A stretch of 64,000 nt of DNA, from the sequence record PV593634.1, one strand, 5' to 3'. Position 1 is the stretch's first letter, and each line of letters begins with the position of its first letter. This document shows positions 1,402 to 62,253 of the stretch, piece after piece. Made by a program: the position numbers and the translations under genes. The notes below the pieces were generated by a model. That model ran no database searches and was not told where the DNA came from. It saw nothing but the letters and a program-made list of their open reading frames with translations.

Positions 1402-3391
1402 CCTCTCTTGCTTGTCCATGCTCCAGTTCACTGAACGTCGAGTGAAAACAGAAGTAGTAGATGATAAAGGCGACACAGTAATTACCGATACATGGATGTT
1501 GGCTCTTTCCTGGTTTAGTTTGGTAGTCCATCGTTATTATAACGAAGAACCTTATCACATCGACGAACTTGCTTTGTTAAATGCCAAAGATGGTTGTCAG
1601 GCATTTATCGATGATGATACGTTGAAGGTTCCAATCGATAACTTCTTAGAACGTCTGATGCCAAAGTATGACGATCCGGTGTTCTATGATTTTATCAAAC
1701 AGCTGATCTTCACATGGCATAACCAGGTTCACAACTATCTCTGTATTAAATCCGAGACAGGTGTGGTATCTGCACGTGCTATGGATGTTGTTCATTGTTA
1801 TCGACATCCTCCAGTAGCTGATCTGAAGAAACGTGTGGCTGAAGGTAAAACCAACTTGGCTGATGCGGCTAAGGAATTCGAAACGATCATGATGACAGAT
1901 CCTGCTTTTGATAAGTCGGTATTCGGTCTATTGTATCGTACTCGTTCGGTTAACCCAACACAGTCGTTCCAGCTGGTGATTGCTCGTGGTGACGTATTCG
2001 ACTTGAACAACGTTATCCTGCCAAACACCGTAATGCCTTCCTATGCTGATGGTATTACCAACCTAGCCGATTCGCTGGGTGAATCCAAAGCAGCAGGGTT
2101 CTCCTTGATCTCTAACGGCTCTGCACTCCAGGACTCCGAATGGTTCCATAAAAAGATCCACAACGTGTCTCAGGTAGTGCAGGGTGTTCGTTATCAAACA
2201 GACTGTGGCTCCACTACGGGCCCGGTGCTGAAGATCATCAGTAAGGAGTTCAAGAAGTCGTTAGCTGGTCGTTGGCGTATTAATGACGATGGAACTACAA
2301 CCCTTCTAACTTATGAAGAATTGAAGAAGATCGAAACTGGTGACATAATCCGTATTCGTGACGTTGCTTGGTGCCATCATGCTGGGCGTGATGGTAAGCC
2401 ATGTTCTATTTGTTTTGGTAAAATGGAATCCGCACTTCCGTATAATCCATATACCCAAAAGTCAGCAGTTCCTGGATTGTTCTATGGTTCTACATTTGCG
2501 GAACCTATTGGACAGTCCATCCTGAAAACCAAACACCGTATCGGCTCCGCAACAGCTGTAGGGTTCAAGGTTAACAGACAGGACGTTGATTATATCACAA
2601 CTGACGAACATGGCGACTACATCTATTTCCATAAAGGTATTCTGAACGAAGAATCCGATCCGTATATCATTCTGGATAAAGAAACCCAGCAGGACTTCTC
2701 CGACTTCCAGTTCATGGATAACATTGAAGATCTTGATGCATCTCGTCTGCGTACTTACGAAGCTATTAAACTGCGCGTTAACATCGTTAACCCAATGTTC
2801 GATAATCGTAAAGCAACTCACTATCCGACAATCGTTACCACGGTAGCATCTCGTGATGCTCGTATGACGAAACCGTTTATCGAGTATCTGTTATCCAAAC
2901 CTATGGAAGAAGAAGGTCGTACCTTTAAGATCAGTCTGAAAGACTTTGACTTCAAAGAACCGGCCTTCGAACTACCGCAGGTAAACGAAGACCTTGATGC
3001 TTATCGTAAACGTGTAGAAACATTCTTGAAGTTCCCGAATATTAACCGTCGTTGGGATGTGAAGGTAACACCTGAGTTACATGGTGAAACTATGATTGCA
3101 TTCTGGAAGGTAGTAGACGAGAAATATAAAGGTGCGAATATCATCATGCATTCTATCTTCCTATGGGCGTGTATGGCAAGAGATCCAGAGAACCTGGACT
3201 TTGGTATTCCTATTGGGGATGAACCTCGTAACTTCATTTCTCTGCACGATGCGGTACTGTCTCGTGGTTTAGGTAACACCTTGTTGTATGGCTGGCAGGG
3301 AAGTGCGTTGTTGGGTAGTCCAATTAACTTCCTGATCAAGAACCGTCAGGGTGGTGCTCTGGAAGCATTCATCCATCCAATCGCTCGTTAA
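1370..3391 (+). CDS. rpoC: Non-virion RNA polymerase beta' subunit, C-terminal part (phiKZ gp74-like)
   Basis: 673 aa; Zn-binding pattern TDCGS...RDVAWC...CSICFG and STFAEPIGQSILKTKH (equivalent to QSIGEPGTQLTMRTFH trigger-loop region); synteny with beta-C and SF2 helicase. Confidence 0.88.
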   Translation: MKKIKLREFANLSCLSMLQFTERRVKTEVVDDKGDTVITDTWMLALSWFSLVVHRYYNEEPYHIDELALLNAKDGCQAFIDDDTLKVPIDNFLERLMPKYDDPVFYDFIKQLIFTWHNQVHNYLCIKSETGVVSARAMDVVHCYRHPPVADLKKRVAEGKTNLADAAKEFETIMMTDPAFDKSVFGLLYRTRSVNPTQSFQLVIARGDVFDLNNVILPNTVMPSYADGITNLADSLGESKAAGFSLISNGSALQDSEWFHKKIHNVSQVVQGVRYQTDCGSTTGPVLKIISKEFKKSLAGRWRINDDGTTTLLTYEELKKIETGDIIRIRDVAWCHHAGRDGKPCSICFGKMESALPYNPYTQKSAVPGLFYGSTFAEPIGQSILKTKHRIGSATAVGFKVNRQDVDYITTDEHGDYIYFHKGILNEESDPYIILDKETQQDFSDFQFMDNIEDLDASRLRTYEAIKLRVNIVNPMFDNRKATHYPTIVTTVASRDARMTKPFIEYLLSKPMEEEGRTFKISLKDFDFKEPAFELPQVNEDLDAYRKRVETFLKFPNINRRWDVKVTPELHGETMIAFWKVVDEKYKGANIIMHSIFLWACMARDPENLDFGIPIGDEPRNFISLHDAVLSRGLGNTLLYGWQGSALLGSPINFLIKNRQGGALEAFIHPIAR

Positions 3392-3426
3392 TAAATGAAA
3401 GGACAAGGATGTCCTAGGAGAAACAA

Positions 3427-3630
3427 ATGGTTAACCGAATTCAAGCTGATGTTAGTGACTCAACAGCTAAAGCGTTTGAAGAGTTCAAGAAAGATCACTG
3501 TATGACAAAGGGCGTGACCATTGATCGTGCCGTTGCATTATACCGTCGTATGTTTTCCGAAGCTCAAGCCGATAATCGTATCATGATTATCGATTCTCTA
3601 GGAAATCAAAAAGAAATCGTATTACTGTAA
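3427..3630 (+). CDS. Ribbon-helix-helix (CopG/Arc-like) small DNA-binding protein
   Basis: 67 aa; N-terminal alternating strand RIQADV, then helix-G-helix (..KKDHCMTKGVTIDRAVALY); strong SD AGGAG. Confidence 0.6.
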   Translation: MVNRIQADVSDSTAKAFEEFKKDHCMTKGVTIDRAVALYRRMFSEAQADNRIMIIDSLGNQKEIVLL

Positions 3631-3640
3631 GGGGAACAAA

Positions 3641-3817
3641 ATGATCTATAGCGCTCGCGAATTGAAAGAACATCTGAACAACACCGCTGGCTTTAAAGAC
3701 GGCAAGTGGGTACCCATTCGCCCAGTTCCTATGTTTGGTTGGGGTGGTTTAAAACGTCGTATCAAAGGCGCCTGGCTGGTTCTCACTAACAAGGCTGACG
3801 CCGTAACCTGGAAATAA
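3641..3817 (+). CDS. Small hypothetical phage protein (58 aa), absent from the supplied ORF track
   Basis: Manual translation MIYSARELKEHLNNTAGFKDGKWVPIRPVPMFGWGGLKRRIKGAWLVLTNKADAVTWK; SD-like AAGGGG upstream; fills the gap between two + genes. Confidence 0.8.
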   Translation: MIYSARELKEHLNNTAGFKDGKWVPIRPVPMFGWGGLKRRIKGAWLVLTNKADAVTWK

Positions 3818-3822
3818 TCGAA

Positions 3823-4128
3823 ATGAAAGAAGTAGAAGATATTGTACTGCTGATCAAAATGGGTGAATCTGTGCAGATGCCCCGCCGTGAAGTATTCTCT
3901 CACTTCCCAGTACTTCGTGTTATTAAAGTAGTTAAGGATGGAGTTCCCATTGGTACTGAATTCTTCCCTGGGGCTCAATCCGTACCTAGTACTCGTCATC
4001 CTAAAACGATCCGTTTAGTAAATCTGAACTGGAACGGTGTCGATGTCCGTGTTTTGTATGATTCAACATCCAAGCAAGTCTCCCTTGTTTCTGGTAATGT
4101 TGATTCCGTATCTATCCGCGTTATATAA
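3823..4128 (+). CDS. Hypothetical protein; single copy of local beta-rich repeat domain
   Basis: C-terminal LYDSTSKQVSLVSG..SVSIRV resembles the repeats in 4138-5322. Confidence 0.65.
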   Translation: MKEVEDIVLLIKMGESVQMPRREVFSHFPVLRVIKVVKDGVPIGTEFFPGAQSVPSTRHPKTIRLVNLNWNGVDVRVLYDSTSKQVSLVSGNVDSVSIRVI

Positions 4129-4137
4129 GGAAAGTAA

Positions 4138-5322
4138 ATGAAACCGCAACATCCCGGTGAGTTTCTGCAGGACCTAATGAGTGAGTACAGGCTTACTGCC
4201 AAAGATGTGGCAGAAAGGACAGGTATCAGCACTCCTATTATCAGCCGCATCATTAATGGTAAGGCTCCGTTATCCGTTTATAATGCGCTACGTATTGGTA
4301 AGTTGTTCGGACTCGACAGAACGTTTTTGAATAACCTTCAGTTGAACTTCGATATGTACGAGATTGCTAATACCAAGAATCTTAAAGACCAGCTGGATGC
4401 TATTGAACCTTTGGATCTTAAACTGGAATTCGATACTGATAAAGATGCCGTCATCAATGTGGCTGGCGGTACTACGGTTGATGTTGGTAAGAAGATCGAT
4501 GTTGATTCTCTACGTATAACCAACTACCGTCGCGCTAATTTGTACCACACTAAACGTGGGGTTGAACTTCCCTATCTTCAACCTGATTGGGACGAAGCTA
4601 AAGCATATGGTAAAGTAAAACTACCATGTGGGATGGCACACATTCATTATGATAAGGAAAGAAACCGTATTCGTATTGTTGGTGTGGGATCTATGGAAAT
4701 TCGTTTCGATTTCGCTCCTGAACCTAAAGAGCGCGATCGTTACAACATCTTTAAATCCCGCGAAACCATCATGCCCGAAGGTTTCAATCTAGAGTCTCTG
4801 ACTGTAGCTAATTATAAAACTGGGATGTTTATTGAAACTGACTGGAAAGAACCCATTCCTAATAATAAACCGGAATGGGTCGTTATTGGCGACATAGAAG
4901 GAGTTAAAACAGCCACATTAAGTACTGGTCGTGGCGAGAACATCAACTTCAAATATTTAGTAGAGAAGCGTTTACTAATTGTATCCGGTCCGCAGGAAAC
5001 CATTATCGAGTTCGATAAGTGTGACAACAGGCCGCGTAATCGTTATCAGGATCTGGTAATGAATAACGAAACCTGGTTCATGCCGATTCATGGTGCTCCT
5101 AACTTATTAACGCTGGAGGTTATTTCTGGTGTTGATAAGCACGGTTCTATCGAACCAATTAGAACGGTTCCGCTGTTCCGGTTGGTTGATCCGTTAATAG
5201 AACTATGGGCTGGCACTGTAAGTATTGGGGAGCAGGTAATTGCTATCTCTTATGACAGGAAACAAAACCGTCTGACTATGGATGGTTCTTCCTCTGTTTG
5301 TATCCGTTTTGAGTACGAGTAA
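4138..5322 (+). CDS. higA: HigA-family (Xre/Cro HTH) antitoxin-like domain fused to three ~90-aa repeats
   Basis: N-terminus MKPQHPGEFLQDLM...LTAKDVAERTGISTPIISRIINGKAPLSVYNALRIGKLFG...LNNLQLNFD is the HigA HPGE-HTH signature; C-terminal ~280 aa internally repeated. Confidence 0.8.
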   Translation: MKPQHPGEFLQDLMSEYRLTAKDVAERTGISTPIISRIINGKAPLSVYNALRIGKLFGLDRTFLNNLQLNFDMYEIANTKNLKDQLDAIEPLDLKLEFDTDKDAVINVAGGTTVDVGKKIDVDSLRITNYRRANLYHTKRGVELPYLQPDWDEAKAYGKVKLPCGMAHIHYDKERNRIRIVGVGSMEIRFDFAPEPKERDRYNIFKSRETIMPEGFNLESLTVANYKTGMFIETDWKEPIPNNKPEWVVIGDIEGVKTATLSTGRGENINFKYLVEKRLLIVSGPQETIIEFDKCDNRPRNRYQDLVMNNETWFMPIHGAPNLLTLEVISGVDKHGSIEPIRTVPLFRLVDPLIELWAGTVSIGEQVIAISYDRKQNRLTMDGSSSVCIRFEYE

Positions 5323-5371
5323 TTTACCTCTCCTATGATATGAATGAAAAACATATCAAAAGGAATTACCC

Positions 5372-5602
5372 GTGATTACCTCAATCAGTGAAATGAAACC
5401 AGGTGAGTATTTCAAGGTAGATTCGGCCGAAGGCGGGATCACCAAAGCACCATGCACTCGCAGAATCCTGGCTGTGGGTGAAAAGACTGTAGCTTCTGAT
5501 GCATTCGCAGATAAGGGCTATCACTTTAAACTTAAGATGGCTAACTACATTGGGACTATCACTACCCCCAATGGCATGGTCATTCATCAATTCAAAATGT
5601 AA
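5372..5602 (+). CDS. Hypothetical protein (76 aa)
   Basis: GTG start after SD AAGGA; ends just before a hairpin. Confidence 0.7.
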   Translation: MITSISEMKPGEYFKVDSAEGGITKAPCTRRILAVGEKTVASDAFADKGYHFKLKMANYIGTITTPNGMVIHQFKM

Positions 5603-5606
5603 AACA

Positions 5607-5630
5607 GGATAGGGGCTTCGGCTCCTATCC
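5607..5630 (+). terminator. Hairpin terminator-like element
   Basis: GGATAGGGGC-TTCG-GCTCCTATCC then TTTATG. Confidence 0.75.
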
Positions 5631-5655
5631 TTTATGTTTGTATAAGGAAAATGAA

Positions 5656-5925
5656 ATGAACGTTATCTCTTTAAACAAAGGCGAAGAAGTAGTAATCAAT
5701 GATGCATCTATCACTGAGTTCTGGCTTACTTCCATTGTGAAGGAGGACGATTCAACCATCGTGAAAGATAAACCGACCCACCCGTCAGAATTCAGTATTA
5801 AAGAGCCTCTGCGTTGTAACTATAACTACGACGGCATGACGCCTACTATTATCTTTGACGTCAATTCCCGTAAGCTGAAAGCTACCGGATACGGCTACAA
5901 GACACTCACCTTTGTATTCAACTAA
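5656..5925 (+). CDS. Hypothetical protein; local beta-rich repeat domain
   Basis: ATG 5656 after SD AAGGA (track start 5638); C-terminal IFDVNSRKLKATGYGYKTLTF pattern. Confidence 0.7.
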   Translation: MNVISLNKGEEVVINDASITEFWLTSIVKEDDSTIVKDKPTHPSEFSIKEPLRCNYNYDGMTPTIIFDVNSRKLKATGYGYKTLTFVFN

Positions 5926-5936
5926 GGACTATCGTT

Positions 5937-6257
5937 ATGATGGCGATTGAATTAAACGGTTTACTGAACACCAATTATTCCCAGAAACACATTCAGGAAT
6001 TGTTGCTTGGTAAGCCTGTGGTACGTTTGGACATTATGCGTATCGTTAAGATTGATGGTACTCACATCAACATCCCTCAAGGTGCCGTTGGGTTCAAACA
6101 AGACTCAGATGGTGTATGGCGTTCTGAAGGCGAGGTGGTACAGAAAGAAGGGAAGCCTTCCATCAAGTACCGTCTAGAATTCGACCCAGCTACCCGTGCA
6201 TATAAAGTCGACGGTGAGTATTTCGAACGTATTATCTCTCGCGTTTATATCGACTAA
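5937..6257 (+). CDS. Hypothetical protein; local beta-rich repeat domain
   Basis: SD AAGGA; C-terminal LEFDPATRAYKVDGEYFERII pattern. Confidence 0.7.
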   Translation: MMAIELNGLLNTNYSQKHIQELLLGKPVVRLDIMRIVKIDGTHINIPQGAVGFKQDSDGVWRSEGEVVQKEGKPSIKYRLEFDPATRAYKVDGEYFERIISRVYID

Positions 6258-6300: not shown

Positions 6301-6401
6301 TTTATATGGAGGATTAGAAAAAGACTGCTAGGGCAATAAGTTAGACCAGTATCTTTTGGCCCCAGTAGTTACTGGATTTAATTTATGTGAGGTTAAATCA
6401 G

Positions 6402-7946
6402 ATGAGAAGAACACTAGTTGTTCATAAAGCGAGCACGTATGTTCGTCTTACTGACTTTAAGCCTGAACTCGTCCAGCAAATATTACGACCTTTTTGTGCA
6501 CGACGTTTTTATAGAGTTCAGAAGGTCCCTATACCAGGTGGTGGACCCAATGCTTTCAAAAAGGAAGTAAGCCACGTATTTGCAAGATTCAACGAAGACA
6601 GAACAGAGTTAAGGTTTAACGCCGAAGCTTTACCTGAGCTTATCAAATTCATGGAGGAAAACGGATATAGTAAGTCTCGTATCCAGATCAACGAGGAAAA
6701 GGTCATTGAGGCAGCTGATGTCAAGCTTAAGCTCAAAGATCCAAAGATAAAACCACGTAATGAAATTCAGGAAGAATACACTGAGTTCATGGGTGGACCC
6801 AAACCGTTAGTTGTTAACAACATGGGTACTGGTCAGGGTAAAACGTTTTGTGCGATCTGGACGTCTGTACAGCTCGGTAAGCGAGTGCTCATAACGGTAT
6901 TGCCAAGATATGTCGATATCTGGATTAAAGCGTTTGGTGAGTTCCTGGACATCCATCCAACGGACATTCTCGTAGCAGATACGTTCGGGGTGGAGAAACT
7001 ACACCAGACCATGAAGGATGGGTTAATTAATCCTTCTATCATTATACTACCGTTAACCAAGATCGACGTTTATATTAAACGTATGAAAGAAGATCCTGAA
7101 CTACCTGGTTTGGATGAAGTCTTTCACGATCTGAAATGTGGTGTGAGAATTATTGATGAGGCTCACGAATCGATCTATTCGGTTTACATGTCTCTGATGT
7201 TTGGTAACCATATGAAGACGATGGCTTTGTCAGCAACGCTTAAAGGCGATGACGATTTCATCAACTCCGTATATAACCAGATATTCCCACAACACTGTTA
7301 TCTACGTCCTCCCGAATATACCAAGTACATTCATGTCATTGCGTATAGTCACCGGATGGATGTTAACCGATACAGAATCAACGCAAAAGGATTCGGTGGT
7401 TATTCCCATGTTAAGTTTGAACAGGGAATAATGAAAAGCAGTCACGTCTGGGAACAGTATTACCAAATGCTCAAAGAGTCATTTAAGGTATATTACCTAG
7501 ACACTCTTCGTGACGGTCAAAAGGCCATGTGGTTCTTTGCGACGATCGAAATGTGTGACTTGTTCTTGAAGCGACTTAAGGTCGACTATCCAGATCTTGA
7601 TGCAATTGTCTTTACGGCTGAACAGTCGAGCAAGAAGGAAACGAAAACCGCTTACCGTGAGCACCAGGTCGTTATTACAACGCCAGGCTCTTGTGGTACC
7701 GGTAAAGACATTCCGAAGCTCTACATCGTGTTTAGCCCTATCTCTGTGAGTTCTTCACAGCGTAACGACCAGATGGTTGGACGTACTCGTCCGATTGACA
7801 AATGGTGGCCTGACTTGGATCCGATATTCTTGTACTACGTCTGCCCTGATATATCCAAACAGGTTGACTATCACAGGAAACGGAGACAGATCTTCGATAA
7901 GAAGATGAAGAAGTTTACTTTGATTGACAGTGGTTCTCGTATTTAA
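6402..7946 (+). CDS. SF2 DEAH-box helicase (phiKZ gp75-like, UvsW-related)
   Basis: Walker A MGTGQGKT, Walker B IIDEAH, motif III LSAT, motif V GTGKDIP, motif VI QMVGR; ATG 6402 follows SD GAGGT (track start 6387). Confidence 0.92.
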   Translation: MRRTLVVHKASTYVRLTDFKPELVQQILRPFCARRFYRVQKVPIPGGGPNAFKKEVSHVFARFNEDRTELRFNAEALPELIKFMEENGYSKSRIQINEEKVIEAADVKLKLKDPKIKPRNEIQEEYTEFMGGPKPLVVNNMGTGQGKTFCAIWTSVQLGKRVLITVLPRYVDIWIKAFGEFLDIHPTDILVADTFGVEKLHQTMKDGLINPSIIILPLTKIDVYIKRMKEDPELPGLDEVFHDLKCGVRIIDEAHESIYSVYMSLMFGNHMKTMALSATLKGDDDFINSVYNQIFPQHCYLRPPEYTKYIHVIAYSHRMDVNRYRINAKGFGGYSHVKFEQGIMKSSHVWEQYYQMLKESFKVYYLDTLRDGQKAMWFFATIEMCDLFLKRLKVDYPDLDAIVFTAEQSSKKETKTAYREHQVVITTPGSCGTGKDIPKLYIVFSPISVSSSQRNDQMVGRTRPIDKWWPDLDPIFLYYVCPDISKQVDYHRKRRQIFDKKMKKFTLIDSGSRI

Positions 7947-60141: not shown

Positions 60142-62253
60142 ATGATTAACAATATCGAGTTTAAAGCTTATGTTAAAAACACGATCGCCTTTGCAAGAAC
60201 GATAGTTATAAAATGTAACGATATCGCCTTGTCAGATAACAGGTTAATGGAACAACACTATGGTTTAAATTCAGGAGTAGATCCTGCCAAGTGGCGTTAC
60301 TACATGAACCTGAACGGCGAGTATCATGTAACAGACCAAATGATGTATGTACAGTCTCTGGATAATGGGGACACAATAGAATTCACCAAAGCTAATTTGG
60401 ATTTGCACTTAGCAACTAAACGAGCTTATCGTGAAGGGTCTTATTATTACTCCCGACTAGTCGAAAAATACCCGGCTCAGTCAATTCTTATTAACGGTGT
60501 AATAAACCCAATCCCACAGTCGGAATCTGTACCAGCAAAGGATTACTCTATCCTACGCTATAATAAAGACTACGTTGAGTGGAATGAATACCAATTGATC
60601 CCTGCTTTACAAAAGCATATCGATGCAATGGTTCTGGGTTCTTTCGATACAGAATACCTGTATACCGATAACCTTATGCTTCCATTATTGATCGCCACAC
60701 TCCATGGTTCTCTGGTCTCCAACATTATGATGTTGAGGAAAGAAGCTGCTACGAGTCGTTATGCTCACAGTTTCTATATCTGGTCTCGTTTGCAGTCTGT
60801 CGGTATTTCTAGCGTATATAAGAAGTATCTTGATCGTAAACAAACCATGTGGTTATTCCGCAACATCGATTACGTTCTCCGTAAGTTAGGTCGTCGTGCT
60901 ACGTTTGATGACGTGCTGGATATCCTGCTTACCCATCGTCGTATTCCATTGTCTCGTTATGAAACTATTCAAACGACCGAAGATATGGAAACCACATTCG
61001 TTCCTAAACCAATGATGATCTCTACCCCAATCAACATGATCAACGAGTTCGGTATGGATACACGTATCTACACTGTACCAGAGGTCCTGAAGAAAGAAGA
61101 TCCATTGGCTATCGATAACGAAAGTAACTACGACCAGGGTGAGTCTGATACGTCCTACGCTATTAAATACGGTCTGTTTGGTGATGTGCCGTCTAAGGTA
61201 CTTGAATCGAATATGACCGATACCACTGATCGTAACCCAGATCGTTTAATGAGGGTTCTTCATAACGAATGGATCTATCTGACCTTTAATGGTCGATACA
61301 ACATCAATATCGATGTACCTGATGTTCGTTCAGGTTCCAAGGTTCGTTTGACAATGCCTCAAGCTGTTATACTCTGGCATTATCTCATTGACCGTTCTCG
61401 TGGTTGTGAACCAAAAGAAATCCCAGAATACAACTACTGGCACGTTCGTAAGTTAGTTGACCCGACATGGAAAGAGTTACAGATGTTGGGTGGTAAGGAG
61501 ATCTTATCCGAAGACACTTGTAAGAACATCCTCAAGGTCCAAGTGGATTTCCCTAACCTGATCACCCCAGACGGTTTCTTTAATAAATGTAAAGAAGTTC
61601 AAGATGCAATGTGGGAACATAAGAAGTTATATTCCCGCGTACTTAACCTGTTCTATGCAACACGTCGTAAGAACGCCGTAGACGCCTGCTACGCTGATGG
61701 TTTGGCTAAGTTTGGTAATTGGGCTACTTATGACGACTTCCTCTTGACGTTGGATCTAGACGTCTGGACATACAACCAGGATGAGTGTCTTGATATGGCT
61801 TGGGCTATTTGGTCCAAAGCTACCGGGTGGGAATTCAACGACGTACAGTCCATCGGCGAACAGCAGCGTATGCTAATTAACCTGATGAAAGATCTTACCA
61901 GTTATACTGTTCAGTATGTTGGTTCTACAGAAACATTGGAAGGTCAATTCAACCTCCCTTATATGTTACTGGCTGATGGTGACCACATTGTTGGTGACGG
62001 GCAAACAAGTCTGGTACACGACCCAGGCGCTATCTATATACCGATTGAGTTCCACGGTACTGTAGAAGCGAGTCTTGATGGGGAACCACCTATCGGACAA
62101 TTACCTGGTCCTAACTGGGGTGTGTCGGACGCAGTTCTTTACGGCTCTGCTAAGGTTCCGATTGAGATGAACCTTTATCCTATCGAATATAAACCTGCTC
62201 CGTTCAACAGTATCATCAGTAACGCACTTACCCTTAAAGAAGTTAAATACTGA
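60142..62253 (+). CDS. Baseplate wedge-like protein (phiKZ gp128-like)
   Basis: 703 aa; N-terminal W(R/K)YY(M/L)N.NG.YH pattern; synteny. Confidence 0.7.
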   Translation: MINNIEFKAYVKNTIAFARTIVIKCNDIALSDNRLMEQHYGLNSGVDPAKWRYYMNLNGEYHVTDQMMYVQSLDNGDTIEFTKANLDLHLATKRAYREGSYYYSRLVEKYPAQSILINGVINPIPQSESVPAKDYSILRYNKDYVEWNEYQLIPALQKHIDAMVLGSFDTEYLYTDNLMLPLLIATLHGSLVSNIMMLRKEAATSRYAHSFYIWSRLQSVGISSVYKKYLDRKQTMWLFRNIDYVLRKLGRRATFDDVLDILLTHRRIPLSRYETIQTTEDMETTFVPKPMMISTPINMINEFGMDTRIYTVPEVLKKEDPLAIDNESNYDQGESDTSYAIKYGLFGDVPSKVLESNMTDTTDRNPDRLMRVLHNEWIYLTFNGRYNINIDVPDVRSGSKVRLTMPQAVILWHYLIDRSRGCEPKEIPEYNYWHVRKLVDPTWKELQMLGGKEILSEDTCKNILKVQVDFPNLITPDGFFNKCKEVQDAMWEHKKLYSRVLNLFYATRRKNAVDACYADGLAKFGNWATYDDFLLTLDLDVWTYNQDECLDMAWAIWSKATGWEFNDVQSIGEQQRMLINLMKDLTSYTVQYVGSTETLEGQFNLPYMLLADGDHIVGDGQTSLVHDPGAIYIPIEFHGTVEASLDGEPPIGQLPGPNWGVSDAVLYGSAKVPIEMNLYPIEYKPAPFNSIISNALTLKEVKY

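Follow-up and report, generated by a model that had tools for sequence, protein, structure and literature searches.

The gene considered here belongs to the Shewanella jumbo phage SXP01 (PV593634.1), whose genome measures 270 kb, and our analysis started from a stretch of 64,000 nucleotides of this record, referred to below as the window. GenBank labels the 394-aa product 'putative XRE family plasmid maintenance system antidote protein'. The gene is part of a cassette of small genes, which has the RNA-polymerase beta/beta' genes on one side and a helicase gene on the other, and the features at the locus are the following:

3400-3415, no strand assigned: hairpin directly 3' of an RNA-polymerase subunit gene that ends at 3391
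3427-3630, plus strand: 67-aa gene, first of the cassette (phrog_8557, E 2e-7)
3641-3817, plus strand: 58-aa gene (phrog_21988, E 4e-14)
3823-4128, plus strand: 101-aa gene, here called U, ending 9 nt upstream of the 394-aa gene
4138-5322, plus strand: whole 394-aa gene, an intact ORF with a HigA-like helix-turn-helix (HTH) domain and three repeats, here called R (GenBank XTB82697.1)
4138-4419, plus strand: HigA/XRE-type HTH domain, residues 1-94 (TIGR02607, Pfam HTH_3 and PDB alignments)
4432-4725, plus strand: R repeat A, residues 99-196 (HMM of external relatives, hhalign)
4726-5028, plus strand: R repeat B, residues 197-297 (external HMM; the copy modelled with AF2)
5029-5319, plus strand: R repeat C, residues 298-394 (external HMM, Smith-Waterman alignment to A)
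5372-5602, plus strand: 76-aa cassette gene (phrog_32154, E 1e-28)
5606-5631, plus strand: terminator-like hairpin after the 76-aa gene (11-bp stem with 6 GC pairs, then a T-run)
5656-5925, plus strand: 89-aa cassette gene, here called S89 (hhalign of family profiles against R and U)
5937-6257, plus strand: 106-aa cassette gene, kept in L004, L007 and L008, with no family match

The genes from 3427 to 5602 lie on one strand, are tightly packed and are flanked by the two hairpins at 3400-3415 and 5606-5631, which may delimit a transcription unit of this extent. A scan that did not include phage-specific promoters found no obvious promoter of the 394-aa gene directly upstream of it, and the search for an operator nearby yielded no convincing or recurrent palindrome, only short palindromes in the coding region and two hairpins. 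Among the neighbours, the 67-aa gene has a counterpart called in the equivalent slot of L004-L007 and OBP, a correspondence of position only, while the 76-aa gene is kept in all relatives, with homologues in N1M2, Yubaba, OBP and AH04. No named anti-defence gene, anti-CRISPR genes included, was identified in the cassette; elsewhere in SXP01 there is at least one further domain that can be recognised as anti-defence, of the Tad2-like type. Further along the window, a 703-aa ORF at 60142-62253 was considered as a nuclear-shell protein and rejected, since it is a phiKZ gp128-like virion protein.

The 394-aa ORF begins with ATG, and an AAGGA motif resembling a Shine-Dalgarno sequence precedes it by 6 nt. 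Its architecture, which a preliminary description had called unfamiliar, is indeed unusual: among 5.8 billion clustered proteins there are only two full-length relatives, with 94% and 78% identity. Both have the same length and architecture as the SXP01 protein, and three independent metagenomic contigs are represented. A search of 1.84 billion representatives with the C-terminal 304 aa returned nothing beyond the known 94% relative, and scans of IMG/VR with the whole 394-aa protein, with P0009 and with N1M2 gp053 gave essentially nothing new. When compared with the 94% relative, the gene has a dN/dS of 0.078 overall and of 0.015-0.13 in its four individual domains. Purifying selection thus acts on all four domains of the protein.

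The assignment of the N-terminus to the HigA type, made originally from characteristic motifs, holds in every comparison. Residues 1-77 match TIGR02607 antidote_HigA (E 7e-14, 51.4 bits, with a curated cutoff of 47.7), residues 18-63 match Pfam HTH_3 (PF01381, 30.3 bits, gathering cutoff 23), and residues 1-93 match phrog_1381, 'plasmid antitoxin with HTH domain' (E 1e-12). Alignments by phmmer to the PDB entries 3cec, 3trb, 7csv, 2eby and 4mcx, which are structures of the HigA/VapI/YbaQ type, span residues 1-76 up to 1-92. The HigA domain is complete, as judged from the family model and from the alignments to solved structures. HTH domains of the HigA/XRE family dimerise and bind DNA, and we infer that the SXP01 domain retains DNA binding. 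Conservation within the protein is also highest here, with a dN/dS of 0.015 and 98.9% identity to the 94% relative.

With respect to the origin of this domain, plasmid-borne HigA antitoxins are 33-39% identical to it over residues 1-92, and the identities of all bacterial and plasmid HigAs found range from 31 to 39%, with no Shewanella among the sources. This survey covered plasmids and one genome per species, and its genome scan detects close relatives only. As no identity exceeds 39% and no Shewanella HigA was found, there is no hint of a recent capture of a host antitoxin.

In HigBA modules, HigA has a toxin partner, and a toxin was therefore looked for at several levels. No gene neighbour has a Pfam match to a toxin family, or to any other family, even at E<=10. 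Pfam searches for RelE/HigB/ParE/Gp49 were negative in the window, where every six-frame ORF of 70-210 aa was included, and also in the remainder of the 270-kb genome, where the six-frame ORFs of 80-135 aa were covered. Altogether, the scan covered 104 + 102 + 101 six-frame ORFs, at the sensitivity of Pfam and phmmer. Two of the closest plasmid HigAs have a RelE/ParE toxin annotated beside them, one in the same operon and one divergent, and neither of these two natural partners matched an SXP01 ORF by phmmer (best E 0.27). The earlier observation that no toxin gene lies nearby is thereby confirmed and extended to the whole genome; a cognate toxin elsewhere in the genome, which would have spoken against an orphan antitoxin, was not found by Pfam and phmmer.

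It had been proposed that the protein is an antitoxin mimic or decoy, in which the orphan HigA would neutralise host HigB/RelE toxins and the R repeats would add avidity or further targets. The complete HigA domain, with a family score over the curated cutoff, and the failure to find a cognate toxin in the phage would fit this idea, as would the Tad2-like domain elsewhere in SXP01. There is also precedent for the principle, in that orphan antitoxins directed at other TA defences are known from phages (PMC11825919, PMC11481870) and plasmid orphan antitoxins have been proposed as anti-defence genes (PMC11541004). However, the literature that we searched contains no demonstration of an orphan HigA countering a defence. 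Furthermore, the recognition of toxins by antitoxins is generally specific, and here the identity to the HigAs found is at most 39%, with none from Shewanella in a scan for close relatives.

The distribution of related genes also argues against a decoy. Phages of many different hosts, 73 records in all, contain orphan HigA-like genes, and one of these genes, gene 81 of the Erwinia phage AH04, encodes a stand-alone HigA-like protein of 106 aa (36% identity, E 9e-17) in the very slot of the SXP01 gene, after two RNA-polymerase genes and before the helicase. Such genes in phages of very different hosts, together with the syntenic copy in AH04, point to a role that is intrinsic to the phage. Beyond membership of the HigA family, the proposal of a mimic has thus gained nothing from the analysis, and we consider it rather improbable.

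A conserved gene, U, sits exactly in the HigB position, which had been missed in the preliminary description. The GenBank record PV593634.1 does not annotate it. This arrangement raises the question whether the two form a toxin-antitoxin pair, with U as a toxin that has escaped recognition and the fusion protein as its antitoxin. The geometry is that of HigBA, with a gene of about 100 codons ending 9 nt before the HigA-like start, and the spacing is comparable in an Azospirillum plasmid, where a 107-aa RelE/ParE toxin ends 7 nt before its HigA. However, U matches no family, toxin families included, in Pfam (even at E<=10), PHROG, NCBIfam or PADLOC, and its AF2 model is all-beta and helix-free, at moderate confidence (pLDDT 71). 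Judged from this model, which is unlike the mixed alpha/beta fold of RelE, U does not appear to be a RelE-type toxin. Nor are the two genes coupled in other phages: U has homologues with 46-52% identity in OBP, N1M2, pEt-SU and Yubaba, and the U loci that we inspected (OBP, N1M2 and Yubaba) contain no HigA-like gene, whereas AH04 shows the converse, a HigA-like gene in the absence of U. Together with the apparent R fold of U described below, this makes a novel toxin-antitoxin pair highly implausible.

Following the HTH domain, the protein consists of three R repeats of about 97 aa each, with a mutual identity of about 18-30%. The repeats had been noticed before, and their number is correct, as judged by HMM, hhalign and Smith-Waterman; together they amount to about 296 aa, though, and not to the 280 aa given originally. 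The recurring linker motifs that first drew attention to them are present at residues 198-213 and 300-316. The repeats are so divergent that a plain self-BLASTP of the protein sees none of them, and Smith-Waterman with shuffles, hhalign and HMMs were needed for their detection. Against 300 shuffles, Smith-Waterman gave z=6.8 for the pair A-C and z=4.8 for A-B, while the pair B-C was not significant; hhalign supported A-B (E 3e-4) and A-C (E 1e-4). An HMM built exclusively from single-copy relatives in other phages recovered all three repeats, at residues 111-191 in A (3e-5), 212-293 in B (2e-9) and 343-392 in C (3e-3), with E 3e-21 for the whole protein among 991 ORFs. These comparisons were made at the level of the repeat, because a global alignment of the 394-aa protein with 175-aa relatives smeared the short proteins over all three repeats.

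The AF2 model of repeat B is confident (pLDDT 89.4, pTM 0.80) and has seven strands and no helix of four or more residues. It has no neighbour among PDB folds (best TM 0.39), the R sequence profile found nothing in the PDB, and R has no match in Pfam, NCBIfam, PHROG or PADLOC. In BFVD, the best hit of the model is a 99-aa protein of the Klebsiella phage N1M2, gp053 (TM 0.83, E 9.5e-7, 29% identity), and jumbo-phage proteins, all of them uncharacterised, are its only structural neighbours. We therefore define R provisionally as a domain of about 95-97 aa that is all-beta in its predicted structure and matches no known fold. It is confined to a small clade of phiKZ/OBP-like (OBP/N1M2-like) jumbo phages. 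Only a Pro, a Tyr and a Gly are invariant, and no catalytic-looking residues are conserved, for which reason R is most likely a module for protein binding or self-association. The earlier suggestion of generic sensing modules thus gives way to a clade-specific beta domain, which also exists as a stand-alone gene of the cassette.

The same fold may be present in two further genes of the locus. The BFVD model of the U homologue of N1M2 aligns with the R model at TM 0.61, and hhalign of the S89 family profile gave E 1.7e-3 over 81 columns with R and E 7.7e-4 over 76 columns with U. For U, the sequence is less telling: the C-terminal motif of R is not found in it (pairwise z about 0), the repeat HMM does not match, direct hhalign of R and U has E 0.11, and a reciprocal search with the U model did not recover the stand-alone R protein. 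By the indirect route of its N1M2 homologue's model and of the S89 family, U is probably a distant paralogue of R, and S89 is, by profile comparison, probably a further one. R, U and S89 appear to form an expanded paralogous family beside the RNA-polymerase genes of the phage.

The relatives show how the modules of the 394-aa protein are otherwise arranged. The R locus is found between RNAP beta/beta' and the helicase in SXP01, in L004-L008, in N1M2 and in the Serratia phage Yubaba. In the cassettes of N1M2 and Yubaba, R makes up a 99-aa protein by itself, without an HTH. In 175-aa proteins (L007/L008, P0010), a single R is fused to the phrog_21988 domain; P0008 and P0009, which have this same composition and length, are sited in the cassette, and the repeat HMM matches 175-aa proteins of this kind with E 1e-10 and 5e-6. 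In SXP01 and AH04, by comparison, the phrog_21988 domain is a separate adjoining gene. Since a HigA-like protein and R both exist independently in the cassettes of relatives, the SXP01 gene appears to have arisen, in this lineage specifically, by the fusion of two modules of the cassette.

Such a history allows for the possibility that R is the functional core, for instance in host takeover or in association with RNA polymerase, and that the HTH would serve as a handle for dimerisation or protein binding that does not bind DNA. The relatives, in which R occurs alone or with a partner domain other than an HTH, are in keeping with this, and so are the position of the cassette directly after the RNA-polymerase subunit genes and the resemblance of R, U and S89 to an expanded paralogous family. 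It is difficult to reconcile, however, with the fact that the HTH is the part of the protein under the strongest conservation and that it fits the models of DNA-binding families along its full length. We thus regard this explanation as improbable.

A more far-reaching reading holds that R, U and S89 represent one undescribed beta fold with five copies in SXP01 and that the HigA domain with its three R copies is an effector of counter-defence or host takeover. Such an effector might be a multivalent orphan antitoxin that catches host toxins, or might tether the beta modules to host DNA. If true, this would be the first case in which an orphan HigA is shown to work for a virulent phage; at present we find it doubtful.

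The explanation that we favour, with about even confidence, is that the 394-aa protein is a DNA-binding regulator or adaptor which arose by fusion of two modules from a variable cassette of small genes. Its HTH would dimerise and bind DNA, either of the phage or of the host, and the protein would act during infection as a transcription regulator or as a DNA-tethered scaffold rather than as an antitoxin. Multivalent binding could come from the three R copies, and dimerisation through the HTH would bring six copies together in one molecule. Domains of the HigA family also bind toxins, so that family membership cannot separate a regulator from an antitoxin. Counting against a regulator, phiKZ-like phages are transcribed by their own RNA polymerases, and classical HTH regulators are not known to take part in their transcription programme. 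The search for an operator and a promoter at the gene, which gave no convincing palindrome upstream and no obvious promoter, counts against it as well.

A further point against it concerns the DNA that would be bound: if SXP01 builds a phage nucleus, a cytoplasmic HTH protein would reach host DNA only.

A repressor of host genes had been offered as the alternative to the decoy, and a DNA-binding repressor does suit the evidence better. In its specific form, this proposal places the HTH on HigA/XRE-controlled operators of the host or of mobile elements (TA, defence or prophage switches) and not on the phage genome. The full HigA/XRE HTH and the lack of a recurrent operator-like palindrome near the gene speak in its favour. 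Many phiKZ-like phages enclose their DNA in a nucleus-like shell, and if SXP01 did so, host DNA would be the accessible target. However, given the low identity to bacterial HigAs, a shared operator specificity cannot be assumed, and early destruction of the host DNA is a feature of many jumbo phages. We therefore see a repressor of host genes as unlikely, if worth keeping in mind, and retain the broader reading of a DNA-binding regulator or adaptor.

These observations have consequences beyond SXP01. Orphan HigA-like genes are common in virulent phages, where they are routinely labelled 'plasmid antitoxin' and none has an assigned role. The fusion ties one of them to an uncharacterised module of the cassette and thus provides a lead on which proteins work together. 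R itself, with a confident model and no neighbour among solved structures, would be a reasonable structural target. The case also calls for caution in annotation, as 'HigA family' in a phage implies neither a TA system nor an anti-TA function.

How does the SXP01 protein compare with known systems? To T4 Dmd and the orphan DarG-like antitoxins, the likeness is one of concept only, that of an antitoxin-related phage gene without its toxin. Dmd and the DarG-like antitoxins target toxins other than HigB, and no mimic of either kind was returned for the SXP01 protein by Pfam, PHROG, NCBIfam, PADLOC, PDB (sequence and fold) or BFVD. XRE regulators with a C-terminal accessory domain and Aca-type regulators combine an N-terminal Cro/C1-type HTH with a domain that does not bind DNA, and like the SXP01 gene they sit among small accessory genes. 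In contrast to the XRE regulators, the C-terminal part of the SXP01 protein matches no known sensor or oligomerisation domain, by sequence or by structure.

With the HigA of HigBA modules (TIGR02607; 3cec, 3trb VapI, 4mcx; Azospirillum lipoferum 4B), the protein shares a complete all-helical HTH of about 92 aa as well as the N-terminal HPGE motif. However, HigA antitoxins are single-domain proteins of about 95-105 aa, whereas the SXP01 protein has 394 aa and a beta-repeat extension of about 300 aa. HigBA modules have a RelE/HigB partner, usually directly upstream, while none was found genome-wide in SXP01, and the SXP01 gene differs further in lying in a jumbo phage beside RNA-polymerase genes, with no lysogeny gene noticed. 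The orphan HigA-like proteins of phages (phrog_1381), such as AH04 gene 81 and gp155 of the Klebsiella phage Miami, belong to the same HTH family and are likewise toxinless. They are single-domain proteins of about 95-106 aa, and three R repeats are found in the SXP01 lineage only. The other half of the protein has its counterparts in N1M2 gp053, Yubaba 02390 and P0008-P0010, uncharacterised proteins that contain R once and no HTH, whereas SXP01 carries it three times.

The Shewanella xiamenensis phage SXP01 (PV593634.1; 269,939 bp; the window matches this record exactly, its coordinates being 62,000 below those of the record) carries split multisubunit RNA-polymerase genes and encodes a major head protein of phiKZ type as well as a virion protein like phiKZ gp128, and phiKZ inner-body-protein domains are present in its relatives, such that we place it among the phiKZ/OBP-like jumbo phages. 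The fusion gene at 4138-5322 (plus strand), labelled 'putative XRE family plasmid maintenance system antidote protein' in GenBank, is an intact reading frame with an AAGGA motif 6 nt 5' of its ATG. Its 394-aa product joins a HigA-like helix-turn-helix (HTH) domain to three copies of an all-beta domain, here called R. There are two full-length relatives of 394 aa each (94% and 78% identity), which lie on three independent metagenomic contigs in the same gene order as in SXP01. In comparison with the closer relative, each domain is under purifying selection (dN/dS 0.015-0.13), the HTH domain being the most constrained.

A HigA-type N-terminus had been recognised in the preliminary description, and database comparisons bear this out: NCBIfam TIGR02607 (HigA family addiction module antitoxin) covers residues 1-77 with 51.4 bits, its curated cutoff being 47.7, the domain exceeds the gathering score of Pfam HTH_3 and matches phrog_1381 ('plasmid antitoxin with HTH domain'), residues 1-91 can be aligned to solved HigA/VapI/YbaQ-type structures (PDB sequences), and plasmid HigA antitoxins are 33-39% identical to residues 1-92. 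By these alignments, a complete HigA domain is retained, more than the HTH motif alone. The best identity to any HigA among 72,556 plasmids and one genome per bacterial species is at most 39%, which shows no more than the absence of recent capture, because the genome scan detects close relatives only; no Shewanella HigA was among the matches.

The same description had claimed three tandem repeats with recurring linker motifs. The motifs are present, and the repeats (bounds used: A 99-196, B 197-297, C 298-394) are confirmed by several comparisons. They are about 18-30% identical to each other, and self-BLASTP of the fusion protein finds no internal repeats. Two pairs, A-C (z=6.8) and A-B (z=4.8), score significantly above shuffled sequences in Smith-Waterman alignments, and hhalign gives them E 1e-4 and 3e-4, respectively. 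The strongest test is an HMM of single-copy relatives from other phages only, hence independent of the fusion protein, which matches residues 111-191 (E 3e-5), 212-293 (E 2e-9) and 343-392 (E 3e-3), with a whole-protein E of 3e-21. R has no match in Pfam, PHROG, NCBIfam or PDB sequences, and among 1.84 billion representative proteins the C-terminal 304 aa found the 94% relative alone; judged by sequence, the C-terminal domain is outside every described family. The conserved positions of the R family, one Pro, one Tyr and one Gly, suggest a scaffold or binding domain rather than an enzyme.

The fusion gene lies in a cassette of small genes between two RNA-polymerase beta/beta' genes and the helicase gene, the content of which differs among phages.

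Small-gene cassettes of SXP01 and relatives, in gene order
SXP01, 3427-3630: 67-aa gene, phrog_8557, not annotated in GenBank
SXP01, 3641-3817: 58-aa gene, phrog_21988, not annotated in GenBank
SXP01, 3823-4128, plus strand: conserved 101-aa gene U, not annotated in GenBank
SXP01, 4138-5322, plus strand: fusion gene, HigA-like domain and three R
SXP01, next in order: 76-aa gene
SXP01, 5656-5925: 89-aa gene
SXP01, 5937-6257: 106-aa gene
Klebsiella phage N1M2 and Serratia phage Yubaba: R alone (99 aa), U, 76 aa, 89 aa; in Yubaba also one 56-aa ORF before the helicase
Relative's contig L007: 67 aa, U, 102 aa, phrog_21988 fused to R (175 aa), 76 aa, 89 aa, 109 aa
Relative's contig L008: as L007, without the 67-aa gene
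Erwinia phage AH04: phrog_21988-like (61 aa), HigA-like alone (106 aa, 36% identical), 76-aa-family gene, four more small ORFs
Pseudomonas phage OBP: 110 aa, 67 aa, U, unrelated 166-aa protein, 76 aa, four more small ORFs

Both halves of the SXP01 fusion protein therefore occur apart in the same slot of relatives, and two different partners have become joined to R. These patterns are evidence, of the Rosetta-stone type, for joint action of the HigA-like, phrog_21988 and R modules. No additional copies of the R, U or HigA-like domains were found elsewhere in SXP01.

The three small genes lacking in GenBank are backed by relatives' gene calls and PHROG matches, and the 67-aa protein is, by eye, a putative ribbon-helix-helix protein. 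GC-rich hairpins after the RNA-polymerase gene (3400-3415) and after the 76-aa gene (5606-5631) flank 3427-5602, which is consistent with a separate transcription unit bounded by the two. The helicase ORF (6387-7946) has a GTG start at 6387 and a length of 519 aa; its counterparts are called at 514 aa in relatives (contigs L004 and L007, N1M2, AH04), whereas the GenBank CDS starts at 6651 (431 aa), probably too far downstream. The Yubaba homologue is labelled 'transcript termination protein'. In the comparison with L004, identity falls from 95% in U (dS 0.5) to 78% in the adjacent fusion gene, where dS is saturated (~2.3), which suggests mosaic exchange or very different constraint inside a few hundred bases. 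Among 102 SXP01 ORFs outside the window (record 1-62,100 or 125,900-163,000) are a small Tad2-like one (Thoeris anti-defence 2; PF11195, E 7e-15), a glutaredoxin and a second small HTH (HTH_37/HTH_3), possibly L030:41150-41461.

A confident model of repeat B, for which six sequences (repeats and single-copy relatives) were aligned, has seven strands and no helix of at least 4 residues (pLDDT 89.4, pTM 0.80). Foldseek found no neighbour among solved structures (best E 0.23, TM 0.39). Among predicted viral structures, the model matches the 99-aa N1M2 protein (TM 0.83, E 9.5e-7, 29% identity), followed at TM 0.47-0.61 by uncharacterised proteins of pEt-SU, PhiEaH1, 201phi2-1, PS119XW and PhiPA3. 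The BFVD (predicted viral structures) model of the N1M2 U homologue, assigned by 50% identity to the U model and by tblastn, also resembles R (TM 0.61, E 6e-4). Family-profile hhalign links the 89-aa protein to R (E 1.7e-3, 81 columns) and to U (E 7.7e-4, 76 columns); R and U compared directly give no significant match (E 0.11). One common fold for R, U and the 89-aa protein is probable rather than demonstrated.

By eye, the C-terminal strands of the 89-aa and 106-aa proteins follow a pattern similar to the C-terminal meander seen in R and in U; profile comparison backs the likeness in the 89-aa family (E about 1e-3) and weakly in the 106-aa family, which U matches at E 3.5e-3 over 41 columns. 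BFVD entries A0A9E7J4K8 (89 aa, TM 0.62-0.69) and G9I9X5 (156 aa, OBP-style accession, TM 0.65) also resemble the R model, and a 156-aa OBP cassette gene just ahead of the helicase (7913-8383 of L010, the OBP sequence) is a candidate counterpart of the latter.

With respect to a partner toxin, a Pfam scan of six-frame ORFs (70-210 aa for the window, 80-135 aa for the other 206 kb) detects no HigB, RelE, ParE or Gp49 family. The closest plasmid HigAs have two natural RelE/ParE toxins annotated next to them, and neither toxin matches anything in SXP01 (best E 0.27). At the sensitivity of these ORF/Pfam and toxin-query searches the fusion gene is an orphan; the earlier statement that no recognisable toxin lies nearby thus stands, and a cognate toxin elsewhere in the genome, which that description had named as counter-evidence, appeared in neither search. 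U ends 9 nt ahead of the HigA-like start, an arrangement identical to that of a HigB-HigA pair (the closest plasmid HigA, from Azospirillum, follows a 107-aa RelE/ParE toxin at a distance of 7 nt); this would fit a novel toxin-antitoxin pair. However, U has no Pfam match even at E<=10 and none in NCBIfam, PHROG or PADLOC, and its AlphaFold model is all-beta with zero helix (pLDDT 71), the RelE fold being mixed alpha/beta. Moreover, each gene occurs without the other: U homologues (46-52% identity) exist in OBP, N1M2, pEt-SU and Yubaba, the inspected loci of OBP, N1M2 and Yubaba have no HigA-like gene, and AH04 has the HigA-like gene without U. U was rejected as a recognisable toxin on these grounds, and a novel pair is very improbable.

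The first proposal was that the protein is an antitoxin decoy. Phages do carry orphan antitoxins against other toxin-antitoxin systems (PMC11825919, PMC11481870). Yet the identity of the fusion protein to HigA is low, with no Shewanella match, the same kind of orphan gene occurs in 73 phage records of many and diverse hosts and is syntenic in AH04, and the HTH is its most conserved part. For these reasons we prefer a regulator or adaptor over the decoy, which appears unlikely. By its domain match, the protein belongs to phrog_1381, a phage group that is poorly understood. A repressor of host DNA is also unlikely, if somewhat ahead of the decoy, and an HTH domain serving as a non-DNA-binding handle ranks behind both.

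The reading as a DNA-binding regulator or adaptor, target unspecified, has in our judgement an even chance of being correct. Probably dimeric like the rest of its family, an HTH domain of HigA/XRE type would carry three clade-specific binding modules. Caution against a regulator comes from the fact that neither an operator-like repeat nor an obvious promoter of its own was found for the fusion gene, and HTH regulators are not known from phiKZ-like transcription.

In comparison with HigBA antitoxins, the likeness is that the N-terminal domain belongs to the HigA family by sequence. A HigBA antitoxin, however, is small, consists of a single domain and is paired with a toxin, none of which holds for the fusion protein; since these defining features fail, we do not count it among toxin-antitoxin components. 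Unknown C-terminal domains are common in HTH proteins, and the fusion protein is best described as an HTH protein of XRE/HigA type whose accessory part is unusual.
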